The translations under genes and the position numbers were made by a program. The notes beneath the pieces were generated by a model. That model was not told where the DNA came from, ran no database searches, and saw only the letters and a list, made by a program, of their open reading frames with translations. DNA of 64,000 nt from Setoptus koraiensis. Its lineage: Eukaryota; Animalia; Arthropoda. This document shows positions 673-54,100 of the stretch, piece by piece. Position 1 is the stretch's first letter, and the number at the start of each line of letters is the position of its first letter. The DNA lies in contig CM106585.1 of the NCBI GenBank assembly GCA_048013815.1, forward strand, positions 62,001 to 126,000, given 5' to 3'.

Positions 673-2385
673 ATGGCTCGTCTGTTCATTGTACCCTTTG
701 TGGCATCAATATTGATATTGTTTCTAGTCAATTGCTCAATGGCAGATGAAGGTGATGATGCAAAGGATAAAAACGAAGCCGCAATTCCTTCTTCAAATAA
801 GTTACCAAAACTGTTTGATTGGGAACAATATAAGAAATTATTTCACAAGAAATACAGTGATTTCAAAGAAGAAATGATCAGAAAAAAGTTGCATCTAGTC
901 AATACTTTAAAAATTTTTGTGCATAATATACTGTATAGATGGTCTAAGATTAGTTACTTTTTAGCTATGACCCAATTTGCAGATTGGACAAATAATGAGA
1001 TAGACTCTATGTACAAATTTAAGGGAATAAAACCAAGCGACGAGACAGAATCGGAGTCAGAGTCAGATGAGGTAGAAAGTAAGTCTAAGCCAACAATCGA
1101 AACAAATGAGCCGATTGTATTGCCCAAATTGAACGAAGAGGAATTAAGTAGTGAAATACAAACAACTATTGCCAATAAAGAGCCAGGTTTTGAATTGTTG
1201 CAAGCTGAACTAGAACTGCGTGATCATGAATCAGGAGAACAATTTAAACATGATGGGAATTCACAAGAGATTGATGTTGATCTGTTGCGACTGCCATCCG
1301 AATTGCGTGAGATTGATTCAAAAGAAGAATTCAAATCGGATAATGGAGTTCCAATAGATTATAGAGAAGATGATGAAGTTGAACTACCAGCAACACCTAA
1401 ATTGGATGTCAACATAAAAGCATATAATAATCAAATTAGAACAGCAAACAAACCAAACAACCCTTTTCAATATCAATGGGCCCGCTTGTCCAATCTAATA
1501 TTCAATAAGGCCAATGATGACCATGAGGTCGTTGATGATCAAGATGATAAAATAGACATACTCCCTCCATCATTGTATAATTTCCTAAGCAGAGTGCCCA
1601 AGATGATCACAGATTATGTGTCGACGGATTATACAAAAGTTGACCGTTACACAGATTGGCGGACATCGGGATGTTTAAGTATGCCCAGAAGGCAATATCA
1701 ATGCGGTAGCTGTTACGCATTCGCTACTATTGCCTATCTAGAATGGGCTCACTGTAAAGACACAGGTGTATTGATGTCATTTAGCGAACAATTCATGGTT
1801 GATTGTGGTGTCCACAGCAAACTAAAGCAATGTGACGGTGGCTACCTAGAGGATCTAGGTGATTTTGTGTCGAATTATGGTGTGGAATTACGAGAGAACT
1901 ATCCCTATACGGCTGAGGCTGGCACATGTCCCTTTAAAAAGGGAGATAAATTGTTTGAGATAGGATATGCAAAGCCAACCATGAAAAAGTGGAATTTAGT
2001 TGACAGAAGCAAATGGCACACAGTATTGAACGATGTTGGACCAATGATAGCCGGTGTGTTAGTGCCATCAGATTTCCAGAATTATGGTGGTCAAATTCAC
2101 ACTGGCCACAATTGCGACCCTAACAGAGGTCATGCCATGCTTTTGGTGGGTCACGGTATAGAGGATGGGACGCCATATTGGATATTCAAGAATTCGCACG
2201 GCTTCCATTGGGGCGAATACGGTTATTTCAAATTGAGTAAACTTGCAAAGAATAATTGTTTTATTGGTGCCTTGTTATCGGAGGTGACATTCAGCGACCA
2301 TCCTGTTGTGAGACGAAAGAAGGCATTGAAAACTGCCGTCGATAGGTATAAGTTGTTCAAAGATAATATCAAGAGCAATCAATAA
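673..2385 (+). CDS. Papain-family (C1A) cathepsin L-like cysteine protease with enlarged pro-region, intronless
   Basis: Signal peptide; I29-like prodomain (DWEQYKKLFHKKY...AMTQFADWTNNE); catalytic motifs QCGSCYAF (Cys codon 1711-1713), GHAMLLVGHG (His 2131-2133) and IFKNSHG (Asn 2191-2193). Confidence 0.93.
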   Translation: MARLFIVPFVASILILFLVNCSMADEGDDAKDKNEAAIPSSNKLPKLFDWEQYKKLFHKKYSDFKEEMIRKKLHLVNTLKIFVHNILYRWSKISYFLAMTQFADWTNNEIDSMYKFKGIKPSDETESESESDEVESKSKPTIETNEPIVLPKLNEEELSSEIQTTIANKEPGFELLQAELELRDHESGEQFKHDGNSQEIDVDLLRLPSELREIDSKEEFKSDNGVPIDYREDDEVELPATPKLDVNIKAYNNQIRTANKPNNPFQYQWARLSNLIFNKANDDHEVVDDQDDKIDILPPSLYNFLSRVPKMITDYVSTDYTKVDRYTDWRTSGCLSMPRRQYQCGSCYAFATIAYLEWAHCKDTGVLMSFSEQFMVDCGVHSKLKQCDGGYLEDLGDFVSNYGVELRENYPYTAEAGTCPFKKGDKLFEIGYAKPTMKKWNLVDRSKWHTVLNDVGPMIAGVLVPSDFQNYGGQIHTGHNCDPNRGHAMLLVGHGIEDGTPYWIFKNSHGFHWGEYGYFKLSKLAKNNCFIGALLSEVTFSDHPVVRRKKALKTAVDRYKLFKDNIKSNQ

Positions 2386-19049: not shown

Positions 19050-22000
19050 TCACGGCCCCAATAAGCTCACTTTGCTATCGCTGAAGTTGTATTCCAAATA
19101 GCAGGCAATAGTTACAAACAGAATGTAGATAATAGTTAAATATACGCCCACTTTAATGGTCATGGCCCATTTGTTGAATTTAAAAGTGATCAACAACGCA
19201 AATACTGTCACAAGTAATGTTAAACAAGTAACTGGTAATGCTGCACTTTGAATATCAACCTGGGCCGTTTCTCCCGCTGACAATCTGATAAGACACTTGA
19301 TGATCCTGTACATCGATCAGTCATTCCGTCATGCATTCATAACAATGATAATAACAATAACGATATCAGTGGTACAGTTATCAGAGTAAACAAATACAAA
19401 TACAAACAGAAAAAGATGGAGATAGAAAAAGTAAGTTGATTGGTGTTAGTTGTGATATGTTGTTGTTGTTGTTGTTGTTGTATTGAGTTCATCAACAATT
19501 CTCATAGTTGGGGTGCTTAAACTTTACTCAAATCACGTTGTGTCGGGCCAATGCACAAGATAAATGGATGAGATTGTGTTGATACGAGAACATACAAACG
19601 TTCCATGTTTATATGTTCTCAGTCGAACAACAACAGGAAAAGAAACATGATGAATGATAAACTTACCATGGCAAACTGAGACAAAACGATAAGTCAATGA
19701 CATTGGATCCTATGGCGTTACACACCGCCATATCGGCTTGAGCTGTTCGCTTGATTAGAACAATAGATGCAATTAACTCGGGTATTCCTGTTCCCCACGA
19801 CAATATTGTAATGCCGGCAACTGTTTCGGGAACCCCAAGGAATTGTCCAAACAAATGAACCATCCAAACGGCCACGTAAGTCAATACGCCTATCATGGTT
19901 ATTGATACAATAAATGTCCATACTGACCAAAAGGCATTCTTACAACCTTTTGGTGTCAATATGCGCATAATAATAGTCATGGGTAACATGGGTATCATGA
20001 TCCATTTTGTTTTTACCCAACACTTTTGATTATGTTCATCAAAACCAATTGGTTGTTGCTTCTCTGGCCTCGTGATCAGTGGAACTGATGTCGATTGTGG
20101 AGCCTCCAATTGTCTCATGAGACTCTTCTCAAACTGGCCAGTTTGTCGTTGTGGTTGATGTTGGTAGGACGCGGACAACAAATCGGCCACACTCAAATCA
20201 ATAATTGTGTTCTGTTGTAGTTGTTGTTGCTGTTGTTTTTGTTGTTGGTAGGTGGCACCGTAATTCAACAGGTTATTGTTTGGGGCCCCATCAACAACTT
20301 CTGTCCATTTGTTGTTGTCCTCTTGAGCAATAGTGGCCAAACCAGGATACAGATTACTGGATGATCTTGATTTTATTCGACCATCAATAATCATCGGATG
20401 GATAACTAACGGGGTTCGTTCGCTAATTTGTTGATTGAAGTTGTTTGCGACCAATTTAGCGCCTTTAGCGCTATTTAGGGTCGCTCTGAAGTCATCCAAT
20501 TGTCTGCTCATTTTATCCTCTGTTGCCTCTTTCTGGCCCATCTCATCTTGTTTATCGTGGCTCATTTTGTCGTCACTCTTACAATCAATGGCAGAATCAG
20601 TGCTGGAAGTAGAGCTTGTCAATGAATCGGCCGTCATGAGGCCGGGGAAATAGCTAGACAACTGGGCACTGTAAATCATGAAGCCGATGTAAAAGAAAAA
20701 CATTACCAGCAAAATCAATGCCTCAGGTCTGTTTATTGTGACGACATTATAATCATATTGATCGATTGATGATCATATTGAAAGTAAGAAAAAATTAAAA
20801 CATATTAGTTATCAATAAAAGCACTCGAATCAAATGAAAGTTATGCCACAATTGCAAGTTTTAATGTACTTACATGTCTACTTTGTTGTCCTTGATGACC
20901 AACACCAATACCAGTATGGTAATTGAATAAAAGGCGGAGTTTCTTATTAGCGGAAACGGGGCCAAATAAAGTACCCTCTTAAATGAGGTTGCTGCTACAA
21001 AAGCACAAGCGGCTGGTACCGCAATCAAATTAAAACAGGCACCACCAATAATGGAACCAGTTCCAATGTCGTCCTCGGTGACAAATACCCCGATAAGACT
21101 AGCGAATAACTCAGGTACAGAAGCACCTAGAGCCATCAGCGTAGACCCAGCAATATCTGGGGGTAAGTCCCAAACTGTAGATGAGGCACAAATGATGTTA
21201 TGGTGAGTGCAGACAGGTTAATATGAGATTATTTCTATGACAATTGAGTCATCTTGTTAATTAGTATGCAATGTTGTTAATTACTAACCGTGGGATAATT
21301 TTTGTATGGCTGGCACAAAGTAGGCATCGCAAATTACTGCCAATCCAAGACAACAATACACCAATATGAGTAAATAAATAAGGAAGCCACCATTAGAGAG
21401 GACCTAAAGTTACGTAATTACAGCAATGCATTAATGTGATTTGAACACACAAATTGATTATTGCGATTGATTTGGGTTCAGAATGATTGGGTGGTGATGA
21501 CAAAATTTAAATAATAATTAGTTTTGAACAATTATATCATATTTAGTGTTATTTTGTAATACATAGATAACTATTATTATAACACAATATACAATATGGT
21601 CTGGGCCTTTGGTCATTAATGGATCTCATCTTGTGGATTGGAATCTATTATTGGTTGCCAGAGTTTAATTTCTGTATATTTTCTTTACTATTAAAGCATA
21701 TGATGTGATAGAGAGCGATATATCAAGCATATATTGATATTTTAAAATTTTGTCTGTGTTTCGTTGCTATCAAGCTCTTCTTCAATCAAAGTTTAACAAT
21801 TTGCATTGTTGCGTTTATGATAGAAAAGCAAACTAGCTCAAATATAATTAACGGTGCTACATTAGCATGAATTTAACTATTATTTGCTACTAATTTGCAT
21901 AATTTTAATCACAGCAATACTGCAAATTTAAACATTTTACTGCTAATAACTTAAACATGTGTAATTCGATCTAGTATCAGTGGTTATCATTGTTATAATT

Positions 22001-22152
22001 ATTGGTAGAAAACTAACCTCATCCAAAAGAAACGAGTCGGAGGTCGAGCTCGACGCATCTAACGAGATCTGAGGGTTGAACATACTCTGTGAAAATCTAA
22101 AATGCAACTGAAGAAATTTTGTTAGCTCGTCAAGCAAGTCGCAAAATTTCAT
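19050..22152 (-). CDS. K+-dependent Na+/Ca2+ exchanger (SLC24/NCKX family); exons 22152-22018, 21403-21289, 21174-20874, 20728-19667, 19305-19050; 5' end uncertain
   Basis: Phase-consistent GT-AG junctions rebuild alpha-1 (DIAGSTLMALGASVPELFASLIGVF) and alpha-2 (GITILSWGTGIPELIAS...GSNVIDL) around a Q-rich cytosolic loop. Further upstream exons are possible. Confidence 0.88.
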
Positions 22153-23688
22153 CGTGTCTTATCTAATTTCACCATCTTAACAGATTATTGATCCAAATCG
22201 ATCAATGAGATTGATATCTGACTCATCCCATAACTAACAATAATATAATCTTTTTGACTAGCAGTCTATGTCATTTCTTGATTGCGTTGTTTCATGATGA
22301 AACGATTCAATTAACTTATAATAAACACCTATATCTAGACCACCATCTCGTCTAGAAGTGAGCTAGCTTGCCAGTTCGCGAAGCTTTGGCAATGTTGTTA
22401 CAATCTAACTTATTTTGCCAGAAAGAGAGACATAGACAGAGACTGAGAGACAGAGATAGATACATGTACATTGTAAGTCACCACTACTACTACCTCATTG
22501 GACTATATTATTTCATACAATATATAAATTGGATTTGATTCGATTGAATTAATGACGATAATGGCCGTTGACACGATGATTAATTCAATCGAATCTGATT
22601 ATTACAGCCATAAGACTGTCATTATTGGTGCTTTTGGCTATGGCGATGATGGGTCGGTGGCTATGAAGACGGAGAAGGCGAAATCTAATCAAAATCAGCA
22701 ACGTTAATACTACTCAAATAATAATAATAATAATAAAATAATTGACGTTGCGTTGAAAGCAGTAGACAATAATATCGGAATCACGCGCACTTGTCGTGAA
22801 TATCATCAATACTAATTGCGACAGCAAATTTGATATATATTTTGTCGCATTAATTTTGTTTTGTGTGATATTTGGCCCATTGGTGGCTAACAACTATACC
22901 CCTATTCTGTTTACTTGTTTACTGCTGGTGGCCGACAGATGTCATCTAGAATCTAGATGTTATTGTCAAATTGTTGATGGCTGTTGTTCTTGTTGTCGTT
23001 ACTTTTCCTATAAAATAAATAAACAACTATTATTGGTGATATTTTTTCTTTCTCTTTCTTTCTTTCTCAAGTATTATCAAACAGAGATGCAGATACCACG
23101 ACGACGTCTACAACAACAACAACAACAAACTAATAAGATACCTTAATTGAATTGAACAAGCCAAACAATAACCTAAGTGTCTCGCATTGGTGTTAATACG
23201 AGTTTGAGATAATATATTTGGAGTAATCAAACAAATTAGTACCAAAAATGATAGCATTAGCAAGAGAGAGAAACACTCAGGGTGAGAAAGCAAAAGGAAT
23301 TGAAACAGAATGAGTGAAGAACGCAACAACAAACCTGACATCTTGTCGTTTCATGTTAATTGTCGTGGCAAGGTAGCCGCTGAATTGTTAGATCAGCAAG
23401 TTTAATCAAGATGATGATCTCATTTTAATTGCACATGCACACTTACACACAAGTATATATATATATATTTATATGGGCTTCCTTAATCCAGCATTAAGTA
23501 TAAAAAATGGTTACCTCTACCATCTGATTTGTTACTAAAATCCTTGAGCAGCGACCTTGATTGGTTGTAGCGTGCAGATAACAACAATTATTTTATATTA
23601 TATATTTTCGAGAGAAGAGAGCTGTTTATATCATCAATTAATCGTTTCGATATGGACAACGAATGTCTGTATGAGAGGTCCAAAATGA

Positions 23689-24304
23689 TTATAATGTGCA
23701 CTGAACGATTTTTGTGATGTCATCGTGGTGCTTTTTGGCAGCAACAAGTGTTGCTGTCTGTCTGTTTCGTCCATGTTTAACATATTTGACATCTTGCAGT
23801 TTGTCAACATGGAAAATTCCTAAACGGATGTCTAGTACAATTCGAGTATCAACAGCAATGAGTGAGGCGACATCACTTTTGTCGAGTGTGATGTCACCAT
23901 TAGTCATCATACAGTCGGCCACATAAGCCACTAAACACATTATTTCATTATCAGTTATGACCGTAACGGCGTGACTTGTGCAATATGAATTGTGTTACAA
24001 TATCACTCGCTTGCGGTGTCGTTGCGTAATTATAATAACTGAGTTGGGTTTGCAAATCGGTTCGCAAGTTTGTGCTGAGCAGATTAGAATGTGTCGTGAA
24101 ATATGAAGTGAAATATGAAAAGCGTGGCAACAATGTTGATATGACAATGTAATTTAAATAAATCACACGGGCTGTCTCTAACTGGGCGACACTATTCGAA
24201 CAACAGATGCCAGCCAATTCGTTGAGTTGCTGGCGCAATCTTAATAAGTTTGTCAGATGATGTCTAATTTCAATTTGAATATTCCATTCCAGGCTAGCCG
24301 ACAT
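23689..24304 (-). pseudogene. Degenerate ROGDI/Rav2-like locus split over two ORFs
   Basis: ORF 24304-23951 starts SLEWNIQIEIRHHLTNL (cf. ROGDI F.WLL..EV..VL..L). ORF 23940-23689 has TNGDITLDKSDV, HVDKLQDVK and GRNRQTATL (cf. GD.L..ADV, W.L.QIQDA, ARNRLTTP). Alignment from memory; splice structure unresolved. Confidence 0.35.
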
Positions 24305-24538
24305 GTTGGTAGTTTTTTAAAAAGGTTTCTACGCCCTGACCAATTGTCATTCTGCAACTTGTCGTTTCCTAATTCCACACAGTAGCGCTTCGAATCAGTT
24401 GTAAATCGTTAGTGTTTTGATTGAATCTCCCAATAGTCACAATCATTCACTATATCCATATAGACATATAGAACATATAAACGTAATATCCACATTATAT
24501 ACACCAGTAGAAAAAGCGAGTGATAATTGCTGTTAAAA

Positions 24539-26166
24539 ATGTTGTCAACTTTAGGTGAGCATTAGGCCGCGTTCGTAAACAATATCGGCAAATTCTGATT
24601 TGAAGATATTGTTTGAAAACAACACACTATTCGTGCAAACAACACAATCTTACAACTTACCTCTTTGCCCTTTCTTTGCCTTGCATTCGGACAACATTTT
24701 CATTTGCAGCATACCCGCTAGTAGCTCTAGTGCTAGTTCTGAATGCCTCTCAACTGATATTAGGCCAATTCGGAGGCCCACTACCACCGTTGCCACCTAT
24801 GCGTGGACCTGTCGGACCGGATGGCATGTTCATTGATGAGCTTGCTCCGTATGGTGGTCACCCGCCCGCAATAGTTACCGCCGGCGTTCATCATCCATCG
24901 TCAAACAATTATCCGATTGGTAAAAAAGACGAATATGAATCCAGTAGCAAAACGAAGGATGGCGACACCAAGAAGAAATCTAAAAAACAATCAGATAAGC
25001 ACAAGGAGAAAAACAAAGAATATGATAGCTCATATCCTATCGTTCGAGATCATTCCTATAGAACACACGAATCGTATGGACCAACAGAAGACAATTATAA
25101 GTACGAGCATGAGGATTACAAAGAGAAACATGGAAAAAAGGAATTCAAAACAACTACAACAACGCCAGCGCCAGGAGCATGGTCCTCTCTATCAAATGCC
25201 TGGAGTGAGTATATCAAAAGCACTGTATTCAGACCGCATTTCGTTCATTATTTTTGAATGGCATGCAACTTAACTGACTAATTGTTTGATTTTTCATCGG
25301 TATCATTTACTTAATTAGGCCGACTGTCATCATTTGGTGGAGCAAGTGACGCGAGATCGGCAAGAAGATTTCGACGTGATGTAGCGACTGGTGATGTAAT
25401 TCATGATGACAAATCACAGCAGCAACAGCAACAGCAACAATCTCAAAATCACGAACCACAAAAAGATGAGCAACAATCGATTAGTTTGGAACAGCAACCA
25501 GACACTCAGGCACAACAACAATTGCAACAGGAACTTTTGAGACAACTGCAGTTACATATGCTGCTACAAGACCCGCACCAGCTACAACAAGTACAGCAAC
25601 AACAACAGCAACAACAACAAACGGTGGCGAACGAAAAAGATGCAAAGAAAGACGAGAAGCTGACCGAAACTACACGTGTCAAGCGAAACATTCCAGAGGC
25701 TTTCCTGGGCCCGCCGGCAGCAGCACCTCATATCGACTTGCCAGCGGCAATAATTAAAGAGGTACACAAACAACAAGAACAACCACAACAGGTTATCCAG
25801 CAGCAGCAACAACAACAACAACAGGTTCAGCTACAAGAGAAGCCCGGCGTTCAGCAGATAGAACAACAACAACAACAACAGCAACAGCAGATCCAATTAA
25901 AAGAAAAACCTGGCGTTCAACAGATAGAACAACAACAGCAACAGCAACAAACATCCGTTGTTGCGCCTAGCCCATCCCTTTCGGGTGATTTGAATGCGCT
26001 AACCACCACCAATCAACAACAGCAGCAGCAACAACAGGTTGTTGTCAAAAATGATGCAACACCGGCTTATACTACTCGTGTTCATGAAACAATCAAGACA
26101 TCCATTCCAACCCAATATGTTTATCTGAAGGTGCCTAAGCATCTGATTTGTGGCGCACATTATTAA
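24539..26166 (+). CDS. Secreted Gln-rich orphan precursor with two furin-type sites; exons 24539-24554, 24710-25204, 25319-26166
   Basis: Splicing gives signal peptide MLSTLAYPLVALVLVLNASQLILG-Q, then Pro/Gly-rich and Lys/Glu-rich segments, RRFRR-DV and RVKR-NI sites, polyQ tracts and two EKPGVQQIE repeats. All junctions are GT-AG and phase-consistent. Confidence 0.8.
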
Positions 26167-26564
26167 TTAGGTCAATAATCAAACTGATCTACTAATGACA
26201 GATTAGCACGCATCAGTTAATAAATAATTGATGTCATTCAATTGATTGGACATAATGTCATAGCATCAAATGGTGGCTGAATAAGAAATAAAGCAAGCAA
26301 CCTCAAGTGAAGAGTGATTCTAACACTCATGCGAAGTACAAGGGTATTGTGTGTATTTTTAACAATTGAGAATGTCTAAATAAACTTTGCTTGTGAAGTG
26401 TTCAGCTAAATATAGCGACAGGTAAAAAATAGCGTCGCTTTCACATTTCTCTATTCATTTCGTTGACATGATGCACATAATCTCTTGTTTTGTTTCCTGA
26501 CAGTTTCGACGGATCTACATCGAAGTAGAACAATATTGATAGGTAGTTAATTTTCGGCTAAAAA

Positions 26565-27269
26565 ATGATGCGAAGATTCGGCAGCTGGCTTCTGTTAGCT
26601 TGCATGCTATCCGTTGCCGTACTAGTGAGTGGACAGGAAGAAACAGTGGACAACAATGGTGATAATTCAAATGATTTCAATCGAGATCATGAATCTGAAC
26701 TAGATCCAGCGGCCGCCGCTACAACGGGTTGCTACTCCTCACGAGATATCGAGCGAGGCATGTACCTCTATGAACAATCAGATAAAGAGGAATCAGCCGA
26801 GTCTTTAGAAGCTGCAAATGAATGGTTTGATTTCACTAACATAGTAATGTTACGCTGTCTACAGCTCGTAGATCTAGACTTGTTAGATGATTTTGTGACA
26901 GAGGATATAAAACTTTTTCATGAAACAACACAATCGTTGCTTGATTTACAGCCCGATCAATTTAAGATTTTTCTAAATCTGGGCAAAGTCGGGGACGAAC
27001 CACAAGTGGCCAGCGATTACAAGATACAACATAAGCAATTATTTGATAAAGTTCTCGAAGAGAAAAATCTGAAGAGAAACGTTATAGATTTGGATTGTGT
27101 TGTTTATAACGATAAATACAAGAAACAAATGAGGAGAGCCAATAAGTGGGCCAATATAGAAAATATGTATCCTCAACAAGTATATTATCTTATGGTGTCA
27201 AACGATCGTTTATTATATCATAGTTTGGTAGCCGATGTTTGTGATGCATACTTAGACAGTGATCTATAA
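26565..27269 (+). CDS. Secreted acidic orphan protein, 234 aa, intronless (paralog A)
   Basis: Signal peptide MMRRFGSWLLLACMLSVAVLVSG-Q. Mature region has four Cys and LMVSNDRL. Confidence 0.82.
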   Translation: MMRRFGSWLLLACMLSVAVLVSGQEETVDNNGDNSNDFNRDHESELDPAAAATTGCYSSRDIERGMYLYEQSDKEESAESLEAANEWFDFTNIVMLRCLQLVDLDLLDDFVTEDIKLFHETTQSLLDLQPDQFKIFLNLGKVGDEPQVASDYKIQHKQLFDKVLEEKNLKRNVIDLDCVVYNDKYKKQMRRANKWANIENMYPQQVYYLMVSNDRLLYHSLVADVCDAYLDSDL

Positions 27270-27507
27270 CAATAACGGATAATAATATATCCATATTTTA
27301 TAAACAATCATCATCATTAGGTCTATACTGTACTGATACATTACATAACAACAACAACAGCATGTAAAGCCTGACAGAAGCGCGAGATGCGCTTGCATAA
27401 CTGTCGCAGTCGATAGACTATACCGGCGTCCATATCCACAGATGCTGAGATATCACTAATAAATAAAATAGACCTTTACACATTGATTGAACCAATTTCT
27501 GGTTTAG

Positions 27508-28128
27508 ATGTATCGGTTTCATTTGGTGTCAATATATTTGCTACCTCTGGCAGTATTGCTGAGATTCAACTACGTCTCTTTTGCTGATGTAACAGGCAAC
27601 AGCGATGCGATCTGTTTCAACTGGAGCGAAGTTGAACAAGCCAGGGCTATTGATACAGCAACAAAGAGAACCATGTTCATTGAAAGTATTTTCAAGAGAT
27701 GCTTGAAACAATTGAATAATAAAAAAGATGTTTACAAAGTGCCAACAAATATATTAGCGTTGGGAGACTACGTGCTGGAACTTAAAACAAATCTGAATAA
27801 CGAGGTCGGCAAAAGGGATGAGACCAATACTGGCGAATATCTTGTCAGAATGTATCATAAATCGGATACAACAAATGTGGGCATAAACATGAAACAATTC
27901 GATCTATTTTGTGATGGCTACAATGCTGACAAGTTGGATATTTTAACCCAGTGTAGCGAACTGATAACCAATTATAATTTACTGACAAATCACTTGCGTC
28001 AGTGGCAAATACTAATGAGAATGTCCGAAACTGATGCACTGCAATTGATGTTAAACAACGACAACAGATTGTTTAATGTCAACGGTTACATCATATTATG
28101 TCAGAACGTGATCAGTATCTCAATATGA
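27508..28128 (+). CDS. Secreted orphan protein, 206 aa, intronless (paralog B)
   Basis: Signal peptide MYRFHLVSIYLLPLAVLLRFNYVSFA-D. RCL, DLFCDGYN and LMLNNDRL motifs are colinear with paralog A. Confidence 0.8.
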   Translation: MYRFHLVSIYLLPLAVLLRFNYVSFADVTGNSDAICFNWSEVEQARAIDTATKRTMFIESIFKRCLKQLNNKKDVYKVPTNILALGDYVLELKTNLNNEVGKRDETNTGEYLVRMYHKSDTTNVGINMKQFDLFCDGYNADKLDILTQCSELITNYNLLTNHLRQWQILMRMSETDALQLMLNNDNRLFNVNGYIILCQNVISISI

Positions 28129-28501
28129 CATATTTAACATGGTTTTTTATGATCGTACAGTTTATCCAGGATCACAGAATTGGAGAGATACTTGTAAATT
28201 GCATAGTAAATGGCCGACTGATGAATCACTCAACAACGAAACTACTGTGAGCTCACTATAGAGTGTGATGTTATTCCAATTAGTAGATAAAAACAAAGAG
28301 ATAAAGTTCAATTAACTATGTTTGTTTTTTTTTAATCGTATAAAAGAGAACGACAATTGTAACGAGAAAGGAATATTCTATCATTTGTCACTACTACTAA
28401 ATGTGTCAAGTTAGTATTTCTCCTGCGCGATTCCGGAACAAAACTTTATGCCACAAATCATAAAATTATTGTAATTATTATATGTAGACGTAGAGAGACA
28501 A

Positions 28502-29221
28502 ATGACTAGGTGTGACATTATGTTCAACGGAAGTTCTAAATTAGTTGGTTTATCGCCTGTGGCTCATGCATTCATAATTCAGTCGCTTCTTTTCATTATT
28601 CATTGTAAGCTATTCCCATGAACATGATAAGACTGATCGATATAAATTCTCAGACTAGATTAGTAATCTATATCTACAACCACAATCTATTCAGGTGAAT
28701 CAAGTGAGATCTTCAGAAGTAGCAGCTATTCTAGCAGTAGCTTGAGTGATGGAGGAGAGCGTATTACTATTTTTAAGGAATCGTCCGAAGGTACCGGCTT
28801 CAAACCTAAGACAAAATATACACAAATAGTTGAGACACCAAGGGGTACATTCGTCAATACGCAACCAACGGGCTTTGTTGAGGTATTGTCCGACAGGGAC
28901 ATTTTCACTAATAGCAGACGTAAAAACCAGAAGAATCGATTAACTGACCAAAGTCTTGGCCGTAGCACAAATAAAAATTATTACTTGCCGTATAACACCG
29001 AATCGCTATCCGACCAATATTACAGAAAGTCCAATCCTTATGCAAGGGATTTCGCAAAGGTGTTGGGAATAAAACAGGGTCATTACACTGATTTATATCA
29101 ACAAATTGACACCCCGAACAGACCACAAGAGAGTCCTCTCCAGGCTGTGCAAGAGACCCTAACATCGATAGCTCAGCAGATACAGCAAGAAGTCTCCGAT
29201 CCACTGTCCATCGGACGTTGA
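28502..29221 (+). CDS. Probable secreted orphan protein; exons 28502-28604 and 28695-29221
   Basis: Phase-1 intron (gtaagc...ctattcag) joins a hydrophobic leader (VAHAFIIQSLLFIIHC) to SSEIFRSSSYSSSSLSDGGERITIFKESSEG. Start may be 28502 or 28520. Confidence 0.7.
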
Positions 29222-29370
29222 TTATAATATGTGAACAAATGTGATTCGAGCTATGATAGAGAGGCTTGATTTGTTTGTTGGAAAAAAATCGAAAACAACT
29301 ACTACTGCAAATTTTGTATAAGAATCATAATTAATATAATAACAAACAATGATATAGTGATAAGCTTCTA

Positions 29371-31212
29371 TTAATCATCAAGCAACTCAACGTTGAATTT
29401 TATTGCGCTCTTTCGGCAAAAATTCGCCTCCAAGGCTCTACCACCACTGTATTCAAATGTTAGAGTGGCAGTAACATTGGAGCGATATGAAGATAATGAC
29501 TGGGGTGGCTCGGTATTGTTTGACAAATTTTCCTTTAGTGGTACGCTTATCGCAGCAATCATAAGCTCTATTTCAGATTCTTGACCAATTTTAATTGGTA
29601 ACGAATCGTCTACCGAATTATTATTCCAAGATATAAGATTTACTCCGTCATTTCCAACATCTGTCAACTGGATGGATATATCACCAGAGTTGTCTTGTTG
29701 TTGTTGCGCAATAGATCTTGGTGAGGTAAAGTTTATTTTTGTGCCAACTAGTATCAAATTAATATAGTCAATATCTATTGAAGAATCGTCGGCATTCTTG
29801 AATTTCACTTTCATATTGCGCTTGTTTCCTCGTTTGACTTTGATACTGTAAATTAATACTACATAGTCTTTATTCACTTGATCCATTGGTATAAATTCAA
29901 TATGAGGCTCTGCCTCATCTTCATTATCCTGAAGTGAGACATTAATAAACTCTAAACGAGGTAACGGGGGACTAACTTCGATGATGTACTGATGAGGAAA
30001 TTTAGAATTATCAGCCAACTTGGGCAACATATCAATCTTGCAATCACTTTTTACTCCAAGTACATGAGTCGAATAACCAGATATTATTAATTTGGTATCT
30101 ACGACCGGATTCATAAGTTTTTTCTGTGATGAGCTTATGGTCTGGTCAGTTTTGGATGGGCTCTCATCTAAACTAGATTCCACAACTTTTGGCGTACCAG
30201 TAAGATGAACAGTCACACTGTTCATACTGTTATCATTTTCTGGGTCCAATCTTAAACTTTTAGGTGTTGATTCAAATGGAACTCCATCGGTAAGTAGTTT
30301 GATACCCGTAACATTTAATTCAAACGGTAGTGTATTCTTGAATTTGATCATAGTGGAGCACGGTTCATCTTGAACCCATCTGAAATCTGCAATCACTGAA
30401 TTAGACAAGGTACGCTTTGGCAGTTGACTTTGATTGTACTTATTACTGAATGGTGTAAATATAAAAGGATTTTCATCAGTAGTGTTGGGAGATGCGGAAG
30501 CACGTGATCCCCTCCTACGCATTGTTATGGGTACAGGTCTAAGAGGCATCGGCAAACTCAATGGCTCAAAATGTAGACACAATGGGAATTTAGTCAAGTT
30601 TACATTACTTATGACAGAACCATTGGGCAAGGTTAACTGAACTGGAGAGTCCTCACCACAACGAGCAGAAAACAATTCTAGTCGTTCAGCTAAATCTTTT
30701 TTCCTTTGAGTTGATAGATAACTCTCCAGAGCGTGCAGAATAAAACTCATGTGTCTGATAGCTAAAGTATCGGCTTGCATTTTTTTACTACAAGTTATTA
30801 ATTCTTCCAGTAACTGTATATGTATACCTGGCCAGAACGAGCTAGTTTGACTTCGAAGTCTTTTCTCATATTCGATTGGATCCAATGTAAGGCCATATCC
30901 ATCTAGAGACTCAAGCAGCGAATTATAACATTCTTGCCAATCTGGACTCTTCAGATGGACAGACACATATTTCAATGCGGCGAAGCGCTTGTAGAAAGCA
31001 GCCTTCCTTTTGAATCCGATACTCTGGTATAATCGCACTGCCAGATCGAGCCGCTCAATTTGTAGATCATTATCTTGTGGGAATGATGCGAATATAACAT
31101 TTTGGATGAATTCGTGAACCAGAACGTGCATAGGTCTAGTATCGTTTGCTGCCTGGGTAAAATCGTAATTCTGTTGTGACTTTTTGCTACCCCTCAAACT
31201 CATCTTGTTCAT
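29371..31212 (-). CDS. TRAPPC9: TRAPP II subunit TRAPPC9/Trs120 (brunelleschi) central portion, 613 aa, intronless
   Basis: EFIQNVI...LYQSIGFKRKAAFYKRFAA, WQECYNSLLESLDGYGLTLDP, NLTKFP and FEYSGG match the middle of TRAPPC9. Confidence 0.88.
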   Translation of the reverse strand: MNKMSLRGSKKSQQNYDFTQAANDTRPMHVLVHEFIQNVIFASFPQDNDLQIERLDLAVRLYQSIGFKRKAAFYKRFAALKYVSVHLKSPDWQECYNSLLESLDGYGLTLDPIEYEKRLRSQTSSFWPGIHIQLLEELITCSKKMQADTLAIRHMSFILHALESYLSTQRKKDLAERLELFSARCGEDSPVQLTLPNGSVISNVNLTKFPLCLHFEPLSLPMPLRPVPITMRRRGSRASASPNTTDENPFIFTPFSNKYNQSQLPKRTLSNSVIADFRWVQDEPCSTMIKFKNTLPFELNVTGIKLLTDGVPFESTPKSLRLDPENDNSMNSVTVHLTGTPKVVESSLDESPSKTDQTISSSQKKLMNPVVDTKLIISGYSTHVLGVKSDCKIDMLPKLADNSKFPHQYIIEVSPPLPRLEFINVSLQDNEDEAEPHIEFIPMDQVNKDYVVLIYSIKVKRGNKRNMKVKFKNADDSSIDIDYINLILVGTKINFTSPRSIAQQQQDNSGDISIQLTDVGNDGVNLISWNNNSVDDSLPIKIGQESEIELMIAAISVPLKENLSNNTEPPQSLSSYRSNVTATLTFEYSGGRALEANFCRKSAIKFNVELLDD

Positions 31213-48127: not shown

Positions 48128-51100
48128 CCCCATAAAGAGGGGAAGTTGTGTTTGGAGGTTTGAGTTGTAGGGAATTTTTAGATAGTAGGTTTTAGTGGGA
48201 TGGTTATAGGTGTTGTTCTGTGAGTGGATGTGAAGAGGGGGTGATGGTGGTGGGTGTGGGGTGGTGGGGGGGTGGGGAGGGATTGGTGCGGTGTTGTGGG
48301 TGGTGGAGGTGATGGGTGTGGTGTGTGGTGGTGTCTGTTTGGTGGATCTGGGCTGGGTTGGGGTGGTGTGGTGGTCTGGAGAGTGGTTTTGGGGGTCGGT
48401 GTGGGTAGGTGGGGGTGGGGGGTGGGGTGGTGAGTTTGTTGTGGTATGTTGTCTGGTGTGTGGAGTGGTGGGATCGGAGGGTGTGTTGTGGTGGCGGTGG
48501 TGTGGTTGTGTGTGATGCGGGTTTGTGGTTGTGTGGTGGCGTTGGTGGGGGGGGAATAGTTATTTCTTTTATAATATCTATTTATATACTTTATTTTTTG
48601 TTTATTATTATATATTATAATTATAAATTACTACTAATAATTATTAATTCTCATTATTTTTTCAAACAAAACAAACAAAAAAAAAAAAACAAAAAATAAA
48701 AAAAAAAAAAAAAACAAAAACAATAAAAAAACACAAAAATAAAAACAAAAAATAAAAAAAAAAAAAAAAAAAACAAAATAAAAACAACAAACACAAAAAA
48801 TAAAACAAAAAAACAAAAACCAAAAACAAAACAAACAAACACAAAACACAAAAAAACACCAAACAAAACAAAAAACAAAACCAAAAAAAACACCAAAAAA
48901 CAACACAAAACAAACACACAAAAAAAAAAACAAAAAAAACAAACAAAAATAAAAACAAACCAAAACAACACCACAAAAAAAAAAACAAAAAAACAAAACA
49001 AAAAAAAAAAAAAAAATATAACAAAAACAACCAAACAAAAACAAAAAAAAAAAAAACACAAACCACCCAAACAACCACCAACACAACAAACAAACAACAA
49101 AACAAAACCACAAAAAAAACAACACCAAAACCAACAAACACACACAACCCAAACCACAAAACACAACAACACACCAAACAAACACACCAACACCACCACA
49201 CCACACACACAACACAACAAAAACACAAAAAAAACACAAAAACACAACAAAACAAAAAACACAAACAAAAACAAAAAAAAAAAAACCAACAAAAACTTAC
49301 AAAAAAACAAAAACAACACAAACAACAAAACCAAAACAAAACAAAAACACAAAAAAAACCAACAAAAACAAACACAAAACAAACAAAAAACACCAAACAA
49401 ACAAAACAACAAAAAACAAACAACACACAACCAACAACAAACCCAACACCACCAACAAAACAACACCACAAACCAACAACAACACAAACAACCCACCAAC
49501 AAACACAAAACACAAAAAAACACACAAACAAACACCAAACAACAAACACCAACACACAACACACAACACCCAAAACACAACACAAAAAACACCCCAACAA
49601 AACCAAAAACAAAAACACCAACACCAAACCACAAAAACACCAACACAAACCAAAAACAAAACCCAAACACCAAAAAAAACAACCAAACAAACACAAACAA
49701 AAAAAAAAAACAAAAACACAACCAAACAAAAACCAAAACAACAAAAAAACACAAACAAAACAAACAAAACAACCAAAAACAAAACCAAACACAAAAACAC
49801 AAAACACAAAAAACACAAACAACAACACAAAAACAAAAACCAAAAAAACAACAACAAAAAACACAAAAAAACACAACAACAACACCAAAACACAACACAA
49901 AAACAAAAAACACAAAAAACCAACAAACAAAAAACAAAAAAAACCACAACCAAAAAAAACAAAACACAAAAAACAAACACAAAAAACAAACAAAAAACAA
50001 AAACAAAACCAACAAAAACCAAAACACACACAACACAAAAAAAACACAAAACAAAAACAGAATACAAAACAAACACACACAAAAAACAAACACAACCAAA
50101 AACCAACAACAACCAAAACAAAAACACAACCACTAAACAACCACAAAACACCCACACAACAAACACAAACGAAACACAACTAAAACAACAACCAACACAA
50201 AACAGCAAACAAAACAAAAAACCACACAAACAACAAATCACAAAAAATAAAAAACACACAAACAAAACAAAAACACAAAAAACAAAACAAAAACAAACAA
50301 AAACAAAACACAAACAACACCCCCACAAAACACACACAATAACAAAAAACAAAAAACCACAACACACAAACACCCCACAACAACAACCAAACACACCCAC
50401 ACACAAAACACCACCACCCAACCCCACACACACCCCCACACCACCACCCACCACAAACCACCACCCACAACACAAAAAACCACACACCCACTCACCAACA
50501 CAAACCCCAAACACCAAAAACCCAACAAACCCACCACACACCACAAACCACCAATCACCAACCCGACCACACAAACAACCCACACAACACAACACACACA
50601 CACAACACCACGCACCATACACCCCAACACCAACAACACAACAAACAACAAAAACAAACCAAACAACCCAAAAGCAATACAAAAACAAACCAACAAAAAA
50701 AAACAAAAACAAAACCACAAAAACAAACAACACACACAACAAAACAAAAACCAAAAACAACAAAACACACCCAAACCACTCAAACAAAAACCACAAAAAA
50801 ACTAAAAAACCAACAAAACATACAACAAAAACACAACCCACACACACTCAACAAACACATAAAACCACAACAAACAACAACCAAAACAAACACAAAAACC
50901 AAACAAACAACAAACAAACAAATCAAACACAAAACACACAAAAAAAACAAAAAACAACCAAATCAAAAAACAACATATAAACACAACACAAACACAACAC
51001 AAAACACACAAAAACAAACATAACACATCACACACACACAACAAACACCAGCAACACAGACGCAAATCAAAAAACAAAAGCAAACAACAAAACAATAAAA

Positions 51101-54100
51101 AAAACAAAAACCACACAAAAACACACAAACACAAAAACACCACACCACAACAAAACAAGACAAACCAAAACAAACAAACCAACACAATAACATAACACCA
51201 AACACAAAACACAAAAAAACACAAACAAAATAAACAAACAAAAAACAAACAAAAACACCAAGAAAAACACACACCAACAAAACAAACAAACAAAAAAACA
51301 AAAACAAATACAAAAACAAAAAAAAACACAAAAAAAACAAAAACAACACAGACAAAACAAACACAACAAAACACAAACAACAAAACACAAAAACACAACA
51401 AACAAACAAATAAAAACACGAACAAACACCAAAATACACAAACAAAAACAACAAAAAAAAACACAAACAAAAACAAACAAAACAATATAAAAACAACAAA
51501 AAACACAACTCAACACAAACTCCGACACAATAACCTAAGAAGAACAAAAACGGACGACAAAATCAAAAAAAAGTAAACAAAAACATAAGACAACAGAACG
51601 CAAAAAAATCACCAATCAACAAAGGGTAACAACAAAAAAACAGTAAGAAAAAACCTTCCACGGAACAGTAACAAAAACGAAAAAAAAAAAAAAATATGAC
51701 AACGAGCGCAACAAGAAAACAACAAAAAATAAACAAAGAAACGTAATAAAAACAAACGAAAAATAAACTGAAACAAGATCGAAAGAAACCCAAAAAAAAA
51801 GAAAAAAAACAGACTAAGAGGAAATGAACGAAAAGAAAAATTGTGGTCAAGACCAAAAAAAAACAAAATAAGCAGCAAAAAACAAAGAAAACATCCAATA
51901 AAAAGAGGCATATATAACCAACAAAAAAACCCAAAAAAAAACACTCTAAAACGACAAAAGAACAACTACCCAAAGAAGATAAAAAGAATAAAAACCCCCG
52001 ACACAACATCAATAATACCAGTAAACAAACAGGAATAAGACTACAACGAAAGAACCAAAACACGATGAACAATATCAACACAAAACAAGAGGAATAAGAA
52101 AAGCCAAAGAACAACCAACAACACATACAAAAGACACACAAATAGTACACACCGAGAAACAACGAAACCAAAAACGCAAATGACCCTTAAGAGCAAGCGA
52201 AGAGATACACCCAACCTCAAATCAACAAAAACGCCATTCACGCAAACACTACAGAACACAAGACAACAACAAAAAAAAGCCAAAAAAAAAAATAATAACC
52301 AAAAAAAAACGGAACAGAGACCAAAAAAAAGATACAAACAACAAAAACAAAGGTAAACAAATCCAACACAAAAGCCGACAAAACCAACACAGAACACACA
52401 CAAAACCAGTCCATTTACAAAAGAGAAAAACACAGACGAAACACCCCGGCCAAAAAAGAACAGCAGAAAACAACACGTAAATCACAAGATAAGCATCCAT
52501 TTAAAAAACCCAAACAAAATAGAAATTCATAAAAACAAAAACCAGACAAACAGAGCCAAACAACACACCGAACAAGTACACACAGGGCCGTGAACAACAC
52601 CAACAATCAACAAAATCAGTAAAACCACCTATCAACTAAAATAAAAAAACAAAACCCAAGACCCAGCAAACAACACCAAACAACAAAGCCCCGACAACAG
52701 AATAGCAGATAAAAAATCCCGAAAGCATCCCACCACTTAACCACAACACAATGCCCAAAAAATTAACACCCATCCAAAACACAAACAATCAAAAACACAT
52801 CATAAAATAAATTGCCCTCAAACAGTCATAAAAAAACACACAAAGAACAACATAAAAAAAACAAAAATTCAACGAAACATAAAACAAAACCCGATAAAAC
52901 AATAAACAAAATAACTACAGACACACAAACAAACAAGAAACAACAAACCAAAAAGACAAAAAAACATCAAACACCTAAAAGAAAAATCAAACCACGACAA
53001 ACCAAAACACACCCATTAAAAAAATAGCCCCAAATAGGCCAGCAAGAAAAAAAATCACTAAACGACACAAAAGAATACAAAAATAAAAAAAGAAAAGACA
53101 GACAAAGAAAACATAATACAAAGAACAAAAACGTTAGAAAAAATAAAAGGTACAAAAATACAAAAGAAGAAAAAAACAGAAAAAACACACAAGCCAAAAC
53201 ACAAAAAACGCACACCAAGCTACACCCCAAAACCCCACAACAACAGAATAAAAAATAAGCAAAACGAAACAAAAGCGACAATATCAAAACCCGACAATAG
53301 AGCACAAGCAAAGAAGATATCAAGCAACCACAACAACACAAATAAAACCAACCCATAAAAAAACCAACTAAAAAAACGAAACAAAAAAAACACATAGCTA
53401 CAACAAATATGCAAAAAATTACAGCCCAAGAACAACCACACCCAACAAAAAAGTCCAAAAAAAACGTTAAAACAAAACTAACACCGAGAACCCACAGAAC
53501 GAGCATCAAAAATATAAAAAGAGAAAAACGACAAACAAGTCAAAACAAAAAAGCCCAATAAAGGCAACAAAAAACATAGCGCCAACAGAAATAAAACGAA
53601 CCAACACACAAAAGAAAAACACATAATCCAAAACAATCACAAAACAAAAAACGACAAAAACAAAACGAACCAGAGAAAAAAATAACTACAAAAAAGCCCA
53701 GCACACAATATACAGAAAAAAAAACCAAGATACACAGACCTAAGCAACAAAGACAAGACAACCAGAAGAAAAAAGATAAACAAAGAATAAAAATCATACA
53801 AACGACCAAAAAATCAACAAAAAGAGCGCAAAAAAGATAGAAACAAAAAAGAAAACCAAGAAACCAAAAGAAGAAAACGAAAAACAAAGAAGCAACTAGA
53901 AACCAGAAAAATAAATAAACCTACACACACAGTAGAAAAAAAACGAAAAAATAGCAAACTACTATAGAAAGGTGAAACAAAAGGATAACACATCATAAAA
54001 ACAAACCGATAAAAAATAACCCAAAATCCAAAAGACCAACAACCAAACAGAACAACACCCAAAACAACAAAAATAATCCCAATAAACAACAAAATTCGAA

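Follow-up and report, generated by a model that had tools for sequence, protein, structure and literature searches.

Four genes that stand in a row on one strand, and that appear to encode secreted proteins of no recognisable family, raise the question of whether they form a functional cluster, such as a set of effectors delivered into a host plant, or are simply neighbours. To our knowledge, the means by which eriophyoid mites manipulate plants are not known, and suspicion usually falls on secreted species-specific proteins. The four genes discussed here were found in Setoptus koraiensis, an eriophyoid with a 47 Mb assembly in two chromosomes that is not described as a gall former (PMC11920263). 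They lie in a 64,000-nucleotide stretch of genomic DNA, which we call the window. We consider it likely that they are four intact genes, independent of one another and fast-evolving, in the streamlined genome of an acariform mite, and that their products enter the secretory pathway.

Gene models, leaders and conservation in a sister species

The original prediction described four consecutive plus-strand genes, each with a hydrophobic leader and none with a recognisable domain, and this description agrees with our gene models, with the leader scan and with the Pfam searches. The region 24539-29221 (+) resolves into four separate genes, G1 to G4 (Table 1), and its limits are exact, i.e. the ATG of G1 is at 24539 and the stop codon of G4 ends at 29221. 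The open reading frames at 24613 and 25486 both belong to the single gene G1, as its exons 2 and 3. Its sole in-frame ATG sits in exon 1, which ends in TTAG followed by the donor GTGAGC, and joining this exon to position 24710 gives one open frame. The GC and GC3 values of the four genes are those of their neighbours, which indicates a native composition. As to the flanks, the labels NCKX and TRAPPC9 are supported by Pfam, while the ORFs that had been called ROGDI-like (23689-24304, minus strand) gave no Pfam match at E<=0.1. An Rfam search of positions 21000-29400 returned no match.

Table 1. Features of the locus, in positions of the window.
Feature	Position	Strand	Description
NCKX-type Na/Ca(K) exchanger exons (flank)	19663-21136	-	Pfam Na_Ca_ex, E 5e-17 and 1e-10
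G1	24539-24554, 24710-25204, 25319-26166	+	3 exons, 452 aa, introns all GT..AG
G1 exon 1	24539-24554	+	16 nt; ATG and first 5 codons of the predicted signal peptide
G1 exon 2	24710-25204	+	Remaining signal peptide, Pro-rich segment, Lys/Glu/Asp/Ser-rich charged segment, Thr run
G1 exon 3	25319-26166	+	Furin-type sites, Gln-rich body, C-terminal motif
G2	26565-27269	+	One exon, 234 aa
G3	27508-28128	+	One exon, 206 aa
G4	28520-28604, 28695-29221	+	2 exons, 203 aa
TRAPPC9 (flank)	29371-31212	-	613-aa ORF; Pfam TRAPPC9-Trs120, E 1e-15; tail to tail with G4

The N-terminal hydrophobic cores of the four proteins reach Kyte-Doolittle 11-mer maxima of 2.4-2.8, as opposed to 0-1.3 for cytosolic neighbours by the identical measure, and small residues at -3/-1 come after them. 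No TM-like 19-mer is found downstream of the leader in any of the four. By inspection and the Kyte-Doolittle scan, which together are a heuristic, G1 to G3 show the features of a classical cleavable Sec signal peptide (a short n-region, an h-region 7-15 residues long, small residues at -3/-1 and no membrane segment further on). The leader of G4 is long (29 aa), its h-region of 20 residues is interrupted and ends in His-Cys, and it may act either as a signal peptide or as a signal anchor. Leader hydrophobicity is kept in the sister orthologs of G2, G3 and G4. Each product is predicted to enter the secretory pathway via a cleavable N-terminal signal peptide; the products probably leave the cell, and they presumably act outside it, as part of a gland product or of a body secretion.

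Synteny was compared with a sister species, a check that had been proposed together with the original prediction. Contig L001 (Logan SRR33593474) carries the C-terminus of G1, then G2, G3, G4 and TRAPPC9 (minus strand), collinear with the window, and the common order continues through PIG-P, Pcc1, MRPL10, a carboxypeptidase and SF3A2. TRAPPC9, which served as the synteny anchor, is 95% identical to its L001 ortholog, with a dN/dS of 0.06. The contig is genomic DNA, since an intron and spacers are present. At the nucleotide level, coding sequence is 72-78% identical to L001, the spacers 44-66% and the intron of G4 51%; for the G3-G4 spacer a direct count gives 62%, the 'mean column identity' of 82% being an overestimate. 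The dN/dS values of the four genes range from 0.14 to 0.39 with every bootstrap interval below 0.6, and they are therefore real genes under purifying selection. The other signs of real coding genes are also present, i.e. the frames are open and exons are better kept than introns and spacers. The rate of amino acid change is nevertheless high, dN being 0.145-0.225 as compared to 0.013-0.112 in six neighbours (1.3-17 times). The locus provides four intact, selection-kept candidates for secreted proteins of the kind suspected in plant manipulation, which are useful raw material, and their exact models include the easily missed first exon of G1.

Predicted properties of the four proteins

G1 appears to be a mostly disordered, Gln-rich proprotein. 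Its signal peptide is predicted to be cut near G24/Q25, exon 2 has no Pfam match, and exon 3 contains two furin-type sites, RFRR (aa 187-190) and RVKR (aa 290-293), as well as a 66-nt (22-aa) repeat in 2.2 copies (25807-25950). Gln makes up 31% of the protein after residue 190. The C-terminal motif YVYLKVPKHLICGAH, which is conserved, carries the only Cys of the protein. The sister contig covers this C-terminal part of the gene, exon 1 and both furin sites lying outside it; over the last 79 codons, compared with L001 positions 1-261, amino acid identity is 76% and dN/dS is 0.15. Furin-like convertases would probably be the enzymes to cut at RFRR190 and RVKR293, and we give processing at these predicted sites about an even chance.

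It is worthwhile to compare G1 with convertase-processed proproteins. In prohormone and neuropeptide precursors, dibasic sites flank short conserved peptides, which often end in a Gly that serves for amidation. G1 resembles such prohormone-like precursors in that a signal peptide is followed by R-x-[KR]-R sites. It differs from them in having neither repeated bioactive-peptide units nor amidation signals: there are just two R-x-[KR]-R sites and no G[KR]R motifs, the segments between the sites are about 100-160 aa long and of low complexity, and polyQ of low complexity makes up the greater part of the chain.

G2 and G3 are probably compact, all-helical globular proteins braced by disulfides. 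The signal peptide of G2 is textbook-like (MMRRFGSWLLLACMLSVAVLVSG, cut before QEE) and is followed by an acidic disordered stretch and then by an all-helical domain with four conserved Cys residues (56, 98, 178, 226), all of which are kept in the sister ortholog P0001 (63% amino acid identity; dN/dS 0.39, bootstrap 0.25-0.57). The AF2 model of G2 is all helical, with a pLDDT of 72-96 across most of residues 101-190 and lower values on either side, and has no match among solved folds (Foldseek E>=0.1; VIA Z<=6.2, rmsd 8-10). The structures that came up (14-3-3, designed repeats, YopO/SPX; Z about 6, rmsd 8-10) are generic helical matches below the noise level of helical bundles. A match to Nnf1 was also rejected, as its Pfam score (E 0.027, 15 bits) is below the cutoff of 23.7 and Nnf1 is a kinetochore protein, while G2 has a signal peptide. 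In G3 the predicted signal peptide ends in NYVSFA, before DV, and the mature part is predicted to be all-helical with five conserved Cys residues (36, 65, 135, 149, 198). G3 is 69% identical to its sister ortholog P0002 at the amino acid level (dN/dS 0.31, bootstrap 0.20-0.51), and its AF2 model is of low confidence (pLDDT 41).

G4 is probably an acidic protein, rich in Ser and free of Cys, in which short motifs are conserved. Exon 1 encodes a hydrophobic leader of 28 codons (MFNGSSKLVGLSPVAHAFIIQSLLFIIH) followed by a split Cys codon, and exon 2 a Ser-rich acidic stretch followed by the conserved blocks KTKYTQIVETPRGT, NKNYYLPYNT, SNPYARD and IKQGHY.DLYQQIDTPNR. Cys is absent from the mature protein. 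L001 keeps the ATG, the reading frame and both splice sites (donor GTAAGC, acceptor TCAG); exon 1 is 76% identical there, as opposed to 51% for the intron, and the protein is 72% identical to the sister ortholog P0009 (dN/dS 0.14, bootstrap 0.06-0.24).

Cluster or unrelated neighbours

Tandem effector families of gall or plant feeders, such as the SSGPs of the Hessian fly and the SHOT and Te28/Te84-type salivary proteins of spider mites, combine a conserved signal peptide and promoter with a divergent mature part. At first sight G1 to G4 are similar to these families, in as much as they are secreted (by prediction), taxonomically restricted, fast-evolving and physically clustered. However, the hallmark of such families, i.e. 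paralogues in which leader and promoter are frozen and the mature region is hypervariable, was looked for in the four genes and not found. Their leaders and upstream regions differ, with no common signal peptide and no common upstream 8-mer; paralogy is non-significant and dN/dS is below 0.4. The exon counts also differ (3, 1, 1 and 2, respectively), and altogether the set is not one of paralogues with a common leader, promoter and intron. No paralogues of the four genes occur elsewhere within the window.

The idea of a coherent island, as in the original prediction, found no support: the similarity of G2 and G3 is non-significant, G1 and G4 are unrelated to these two, and no upstream motif is shared. 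Co-orientation of four genes is in itself weak evidence (P = 1/8). If about 6% of the genes encode secreted proteins, a fraction taken from Aculops lycopersici (PMC7738191), and independence is assumed, about 0.1 runs of four secreted genes are expected per 10,000-gene genome; such a run is mildly unusual, and the locus was chosen by a whole-genome scan. Most likely, G1 to G4 are unrelated neighbours and not a functional or co-regulated module.

A narrower form of the cluster idea concerns G2 and G3, which might have arisen long ago by tandem duplication within a single family of helical, Cys-braced secreted proteins; in that case at least the middle of the region would be a genuine family cluster. 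The two proteins are alike in size and in their all-helical prediction, BLASTP and hhalign choose the same gapless register (G2 192-219 / G3 163-190), and their Cys residues take up corresponding positions in the predicted helices. The spacing from Cys to Trp is 17 in both, and from Trp to the last Cys 31 and 32 (C178/C149, W195/W166, C226/C198). One pairwise comparison reached a z of 4.3, but the remaining ones gave values from -1.0 to 2.9, the profile-profile shuffle test gave a z of 0.8 (56 of 300 shuffles equal or better), and the hhalign E value is 0.075 with a probability below 1%. In addition, the G3 model is too poor for a comparison of folds. We therefore regard common descent of G2 and G3 as possible but somewhat doubtful, and keep to four independent genes.

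Another possibility, raised in the original prediction beside roles in silk, glue or cuticle, is that the four genes belong to a lineage-specific salivary secretome cluster of a plant-feeding eriophyoid, the products being delivered into the host as effectors. All four have a secretory leader, lack a known domain and evolve fast. In Aculops lycopersici, the predicted secreted proteins number 612, of which more than half (351) are outside the orthogroups common to other species, and effectors are believed to be specific to single species (PMC7738191). That secretome is like G1 to G4 in these general features: the proteins are small, carry a signal peptide and for the most part lack orthologues in other mites, and the genome that encodes them is compact and intron-poor (PMC7738191). 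On the other hand, whole-gene dN/dS is well below 1 in all four genes, so there is no arms-race signature at whole-gene resolution, and the absence of a shared promoter motif, a shared signal peptide and significant paralogy applies here as well. We find the effector reading quite improbable and prefer that of independent secreted proteins; roles in silk or cuticle likewise found no support.

Orphan status and age of the genes

Searches of large protein collections, carried out for G2, G3 and G4, gave one match each among 5.8 billion proteins, namely the sister ortholog. JGI metagenomes contained no relatives of G3 and G4, Pfam searches of all ORFs and exons found no family above threshold for G1 to G4, and PDB sequences contained no match under E 0.2 to profiles of G2 and G3 or to G4. 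When G1 to G4 were compared by tblastn with TRAPPC9-bearing contigs of other relatives (L002-L005), the best E value was 1.9. In the more distant relative L004, MRPL10 comes 540 bp after TRAPPC9, and in L003, also more distant, the contig stops 446 bp beyond it; L002 is too short for TRAPPC9 synteny and the context in L005 is wholly different.

Judged by TRAPPC9, the next relative is about 6 times further away than the sister species (Poisson d 0.38 vs 0.06), and the substitution rates predict an identity of roughly 6-20% for the four proteins at that distance. At such high rates homologues become undetectable in the next relative, and 'lineage-specific' is consequently indistinguishable from 'old but fast'. 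The apparent orphan status of G1 to G4 is thus what the rates predict, whether the genes are young or old, and the locus can serve as a worked example in which orphan status is not readable as recent origin.

By the same argument of rates, existing homologues would be invisible, which leaves room for a reading in which the four encode proteins of the extracellular space or the secretory pathway and are old genes, conserved in arthropods or acariforms, whose sequences have diverged beyond recognition. Candidates would be a prohormone-like precursor (G1), matrix, cuticle, eggshell or spermatophore components, and luminal helpers. The stronger purifying selection on G4 and on the C-terminus of G1 (dN/dS about 0.15) agrees with this reading, as does the combination of a signal peptide and two R-x-[KR]-R sites in G1. 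Against it, G1 has no repeated short peptides between dibasic sites and no Gly-Lys-Arg amidation signals, and there is no positional counterpart beside TRAPPC9 in L003 and L004, where gene order is rearranged anyway. We consider this reading rather unlikely as a whole.

There is one noteworthy region within G3. At the 3' end of its coding sequence (27970-28128, plus strand) the synonymous sites are near-frozen between the two species, pS being 0.06-0.12 as compared to about 0.49 in the remaining part of the gene. An overlapping ORF found no support as the cause, as no alternative-frame or antisense ORF is conserved, and neither did an RNA structure (fold z-score -1.5, no Rfam match). A much bolder reading would join several points, i.e. 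that G2, and perhaps G3, has an unseen fold confined to one eriophyoid genus (all-helical, disulfide-braced and secreted), that all four proteins are host-delivered gland products, and that the 3' end of G3 is regulatory, its frozen synonymous sites marking an embedded nucleotide-level element that controls the locus. We hold this combination to be very improbable as a whole.

Four apparently secreted orphan genes

The four genes G1 to G4 encode real, fast-evolving and apparently secreted orphan proteins, and a sister species has kept them as a block. The window is eukaryotic DNA of about 38% GC, compact and poor in introns. The original prediction described four consecutive plus-strand genes at 24539-29221 between the ROGDI-like/NCKX loci and TRAPPC9, and the outer coordinates match our gene models exactly, with Pfam hits for the exchanger and TRAPPC9 on the two sides. 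The "ROGDI-like" ORFs (117 and 83 aa, 23689-24304, minus strand) have no Pfam match at E<=0.1. Note that the mechanical ORF list of the block contains five ORFs, of which those at 24613 and 25486 are one gene, G1, joined by a GT..AG intron (25205-25318). The only in-frame ATG of G1 comes from a 16-nt exon (24539-24554) spliced to 24710, and exactly one combination of canonical splice sites yields one uninterrupted reading frame, 452 aa long.

Features of the locus (window coordinates)
Feature	Coordinates	Strand	Remarks
NCKX-type exchanger	19663-21136	minus	Pfam Na_Ca_ex
G1	24539-24554, 24710-25204, 25319-26166	plus	3 exons, 452 aa
G2	26565-27269	plus	single exon, 234 aa
G3	27508-28128	plus	single exon, 206 aa
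G4	28520-28604, 28695-29221	plus	2 exons, 203 aa
TRAPPC9	29371-31212	minus	Pfam; right flank of the four-gene block

The N-termini up to the predicted cut are MLSTLAYPLVALVLVLNASQLILG (followed by QF) in G1, MMRRFGSWLLLACMLSVAVLVSG (QE) in G2, MYRFHLVSIYLLPLAVLLRFNYVSFA (DV) in G3 and MFNGSSKLVGLSPVAHAFIIQSLLFIIHC (ES) in G4. The hydrophobic leaders claimed for all four genes were recovered, on a heuristic reading, as Kyte-Doolittle 11-mer cores of 2.4-2.8, while cytosolic neighbours (TRAPPC9, SF3A2, PRA1 and Pcc1 among them) reach at most 1.3 on the same measure; a hydropathy scan found no TM-like segment after the leader in any of the four. On this heuristic the G2 and G3 leaders read as textbook signal peptides, the G1 leader has no basic n-region, and the long G4 leader could be a membrane anchor. 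A clear signal-peptide-like leader, MARLFIVPFVASILILFLVNCSMA, is also found in a 570-aa ATG-initiated ORF at 673-2385 (plus strand).

Behind its leader G1 is first Pro-rich, then highly charged (Lys, Glu, Asp and Ser), and then has a run of Thr; next come RFRR (187-190), a Gln-rich body in which Q makes up 31% and a 22-aa unit is present in 2.2 copies (25807-25950), and RVKR (290-293). The C-terminal YVYLKVPKHLICGAH is conserved and contains the sole Cys. We read G1 as a putative disordered secreted proprotein, whose furin-type motifs may mark sites of convertase cleavage. In G2 a variable, acidic segment precedes a helical domain whose four Cys are all conserved in the orthologue, and one of five AF2 models is confident across most of residues 101-190 (block-mean pLDDT 72-96). 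Foldseek against the PDB gave this model no match better than E 0.1, and an exhaustive VIA search gave Z<=6.2 at an rmsd of 8-10 Å, which is under VIA's stated noise level for helical proteins. G3 is predicted to be all-helical with five conserved Cys (AF2 model unreliable, pLDDT 41), and mature G4 has no Cys, a Ser-rich and acidic start, and several strongly conserved short blocks. The lack of a recognisable domain was upheld, as no Pfam family is above threshold for G1-G4 and PDB sequence searches found no relative of G2, G3 or G4.

Conservation and rate of change in a sister species

Among 5.8 billion proteins searched by word-seeded HMMER, G2, G3 and G4 exon 2 had exactly one match apiece, all on one 11-kb Logan contig from the sister species (SRR33593474). 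This contig carries the G1 C-terminus, G2, G3, G4, TRAPPC9 (minus strand), PIG-P, Pcc1, MRPL10, an M14 carboxypeptidase and SF3A2, in the order and orientation of the window. The start codon, GTAAGC donor and TCAG acceptor of G4 are kept, and nucleotide identity is 72-78% for coding regions, against 44-66% for spacers and 51% for the intron of G4.

Nei-Gojobori estimates, window against the sister contig
Region	dN	dS	dN/dS	Bootstrap 95%
G1 C-terminus	0.145	0.96	0.15	0.06-0.34
G2	0.222	0.57	0.39	0.25-0.57
G3	0.173	0.56	0.31	0.20-0.51
G4 exon 2	0.165	1.15	0.14	0.06-0.24

In the same comparison six neighbours show dN of 0.013-0.112 and dN/dS of 0.02-0.12; G1-G4 are therefore real genes under purifying selection, yet their proteins change 1.3-17 times faster (the 1.3 comes from MRPL10, and each of the other five gives 3.3 or more). 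No arms-race signal shows in the whole-gene dN/dS, although with two sequences compared positively selected single sites could be hidden. Base composition and GC3 are like those of the neighbours, so there is no hint of foreign origin.

Neighbours or module, and the meaning of orphan status

The original prediction stands as to the genes and their leaders, now with exact models, orthologues and selection estimates; its interpretation has partial support. Saliva, effector, silk, glue or cuticle are conjectural roles for the products, and the comparisons within the block do not suggest a coherent cluster. Only G2 and G3 could plausibly be paralogues: near the C-terminus BLASTP (E 0.74) chooses the same gapless register as hhalign (E 0.075, probability <1%), and the two proteins agree in the spacing C-17-W and W-31/32-C and in Cys placement on predicted helices. 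Shuffle tests are inconsistent (z -1.0 to 4.3) and the profile-profile test is null (z 0.8), and we regard their paralogy as less likely than not. Within the window G1 and G4 have no similar sequence, exon structures differ among the four genes, no 8-mer recurs upstream of at least three of them, and 7-mers are shared about as often as shuffled sequence predicts. Co-orientation has a chance P of 1/8. Secreted proteins account for about 6% of the genes of Aculops lycopersici (PMC7738191); at that fraction about 0.1 chance runs of four are expected per genome, which makes the run mildly unusual, but the locus was picked by a genome-wide scan. The four genes probably just lie side by side and form no module, and genes of this type are common in eriophyoid-like genomes.

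TRAPPC9 relatives from an exhaustive HMMER search served as synteny anchors. The closest named proteins are those of Dinothrombium tinctorium and Leptotrombidium deliense, which places the genome among acariform mites. TRAPPC9 is a single ORF of ~570-613 aa in the window and in three Logan relatives (P0004, P0010 and P0012; 69%, 49% and 45% identity), and the closest named trombidiform proteins have 990-1056 aa. The occurrence of the short form in three relatives indicates that the trimming is clade-wide and no assembly artefact.

The NCKX-TRAPPC9 synteny proposed as a check was compared on the TRAPPC9 side: the sister contig keeps the block from the G1 C-terminus to G4, the 69% relative has a contig too short for the comparison, that of the 49% relative (L003) stops 446 bp past TRAPPC9, that of the 45% relative (L004) has 540 bp from TRAPPC9 to MRPL10 in a rearranged order, and a fourth has an unrelated context. 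G1-G4 have no tblastn match on these four contigs, and JGI metagenome scans found no relatives of G3 and G4. Over the same TRAPPC9 segment, however, the Poisson distance is 0.38 to the next relative vs 0.06 to the sister (~6 times); the G1-G4 distances to the sister (0.27-0.46), scaled likewise, predict ~6-20% identity in the next relative, and their absence there therefore says little. Orphan status here means no detectable relative, not youth. Upstream of TRAPPC9 the window has PIG-P and Pcc1, with MRPL10 on the other strand, while in L004 MRPL10 comes after TRAPPC9; TRAPPC9 microsynteny has been reshuffled within this mite lineage. In L004 (2084-5480) and L003 (1677-3735) the start of TRAPPC9 adjoins or overlaps a small zinc-finger gene of the HIT-like CxxC type.

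Frozen synonymous sites at the 3' end of G3

The last 52 codons of G3 (155-206, 27970-28128) have a pS of 0.06-0.12 vs ~0.49 upstream in the gene, with 2.5 synonymous differences observed vs ~14 expected (binomial estimate ~1e-6); dN is about equal to dS in this segment, and 47 nt (27983-28029) are identical without exception between the window and the sister contig. A search of the segment for a conserved alternative-frame or antisense ORF found none, no Rfam family matches it, and its RNA fold z-score is -1.5; neither an overlapping ORF nor an Rfam family nor a conserved RNA fold accounts for the freeze. Elsewhere in the window, an 11-kb tract (~48660-60000) is nearly all A and C when read on the plus strand, in degenerate ACAAAC-like repeats with an AT skew of 0.7-0.9 and a GC skew that reaches -0.8; it has hardly any G or T, and AG dinucleotides are therefore rare.
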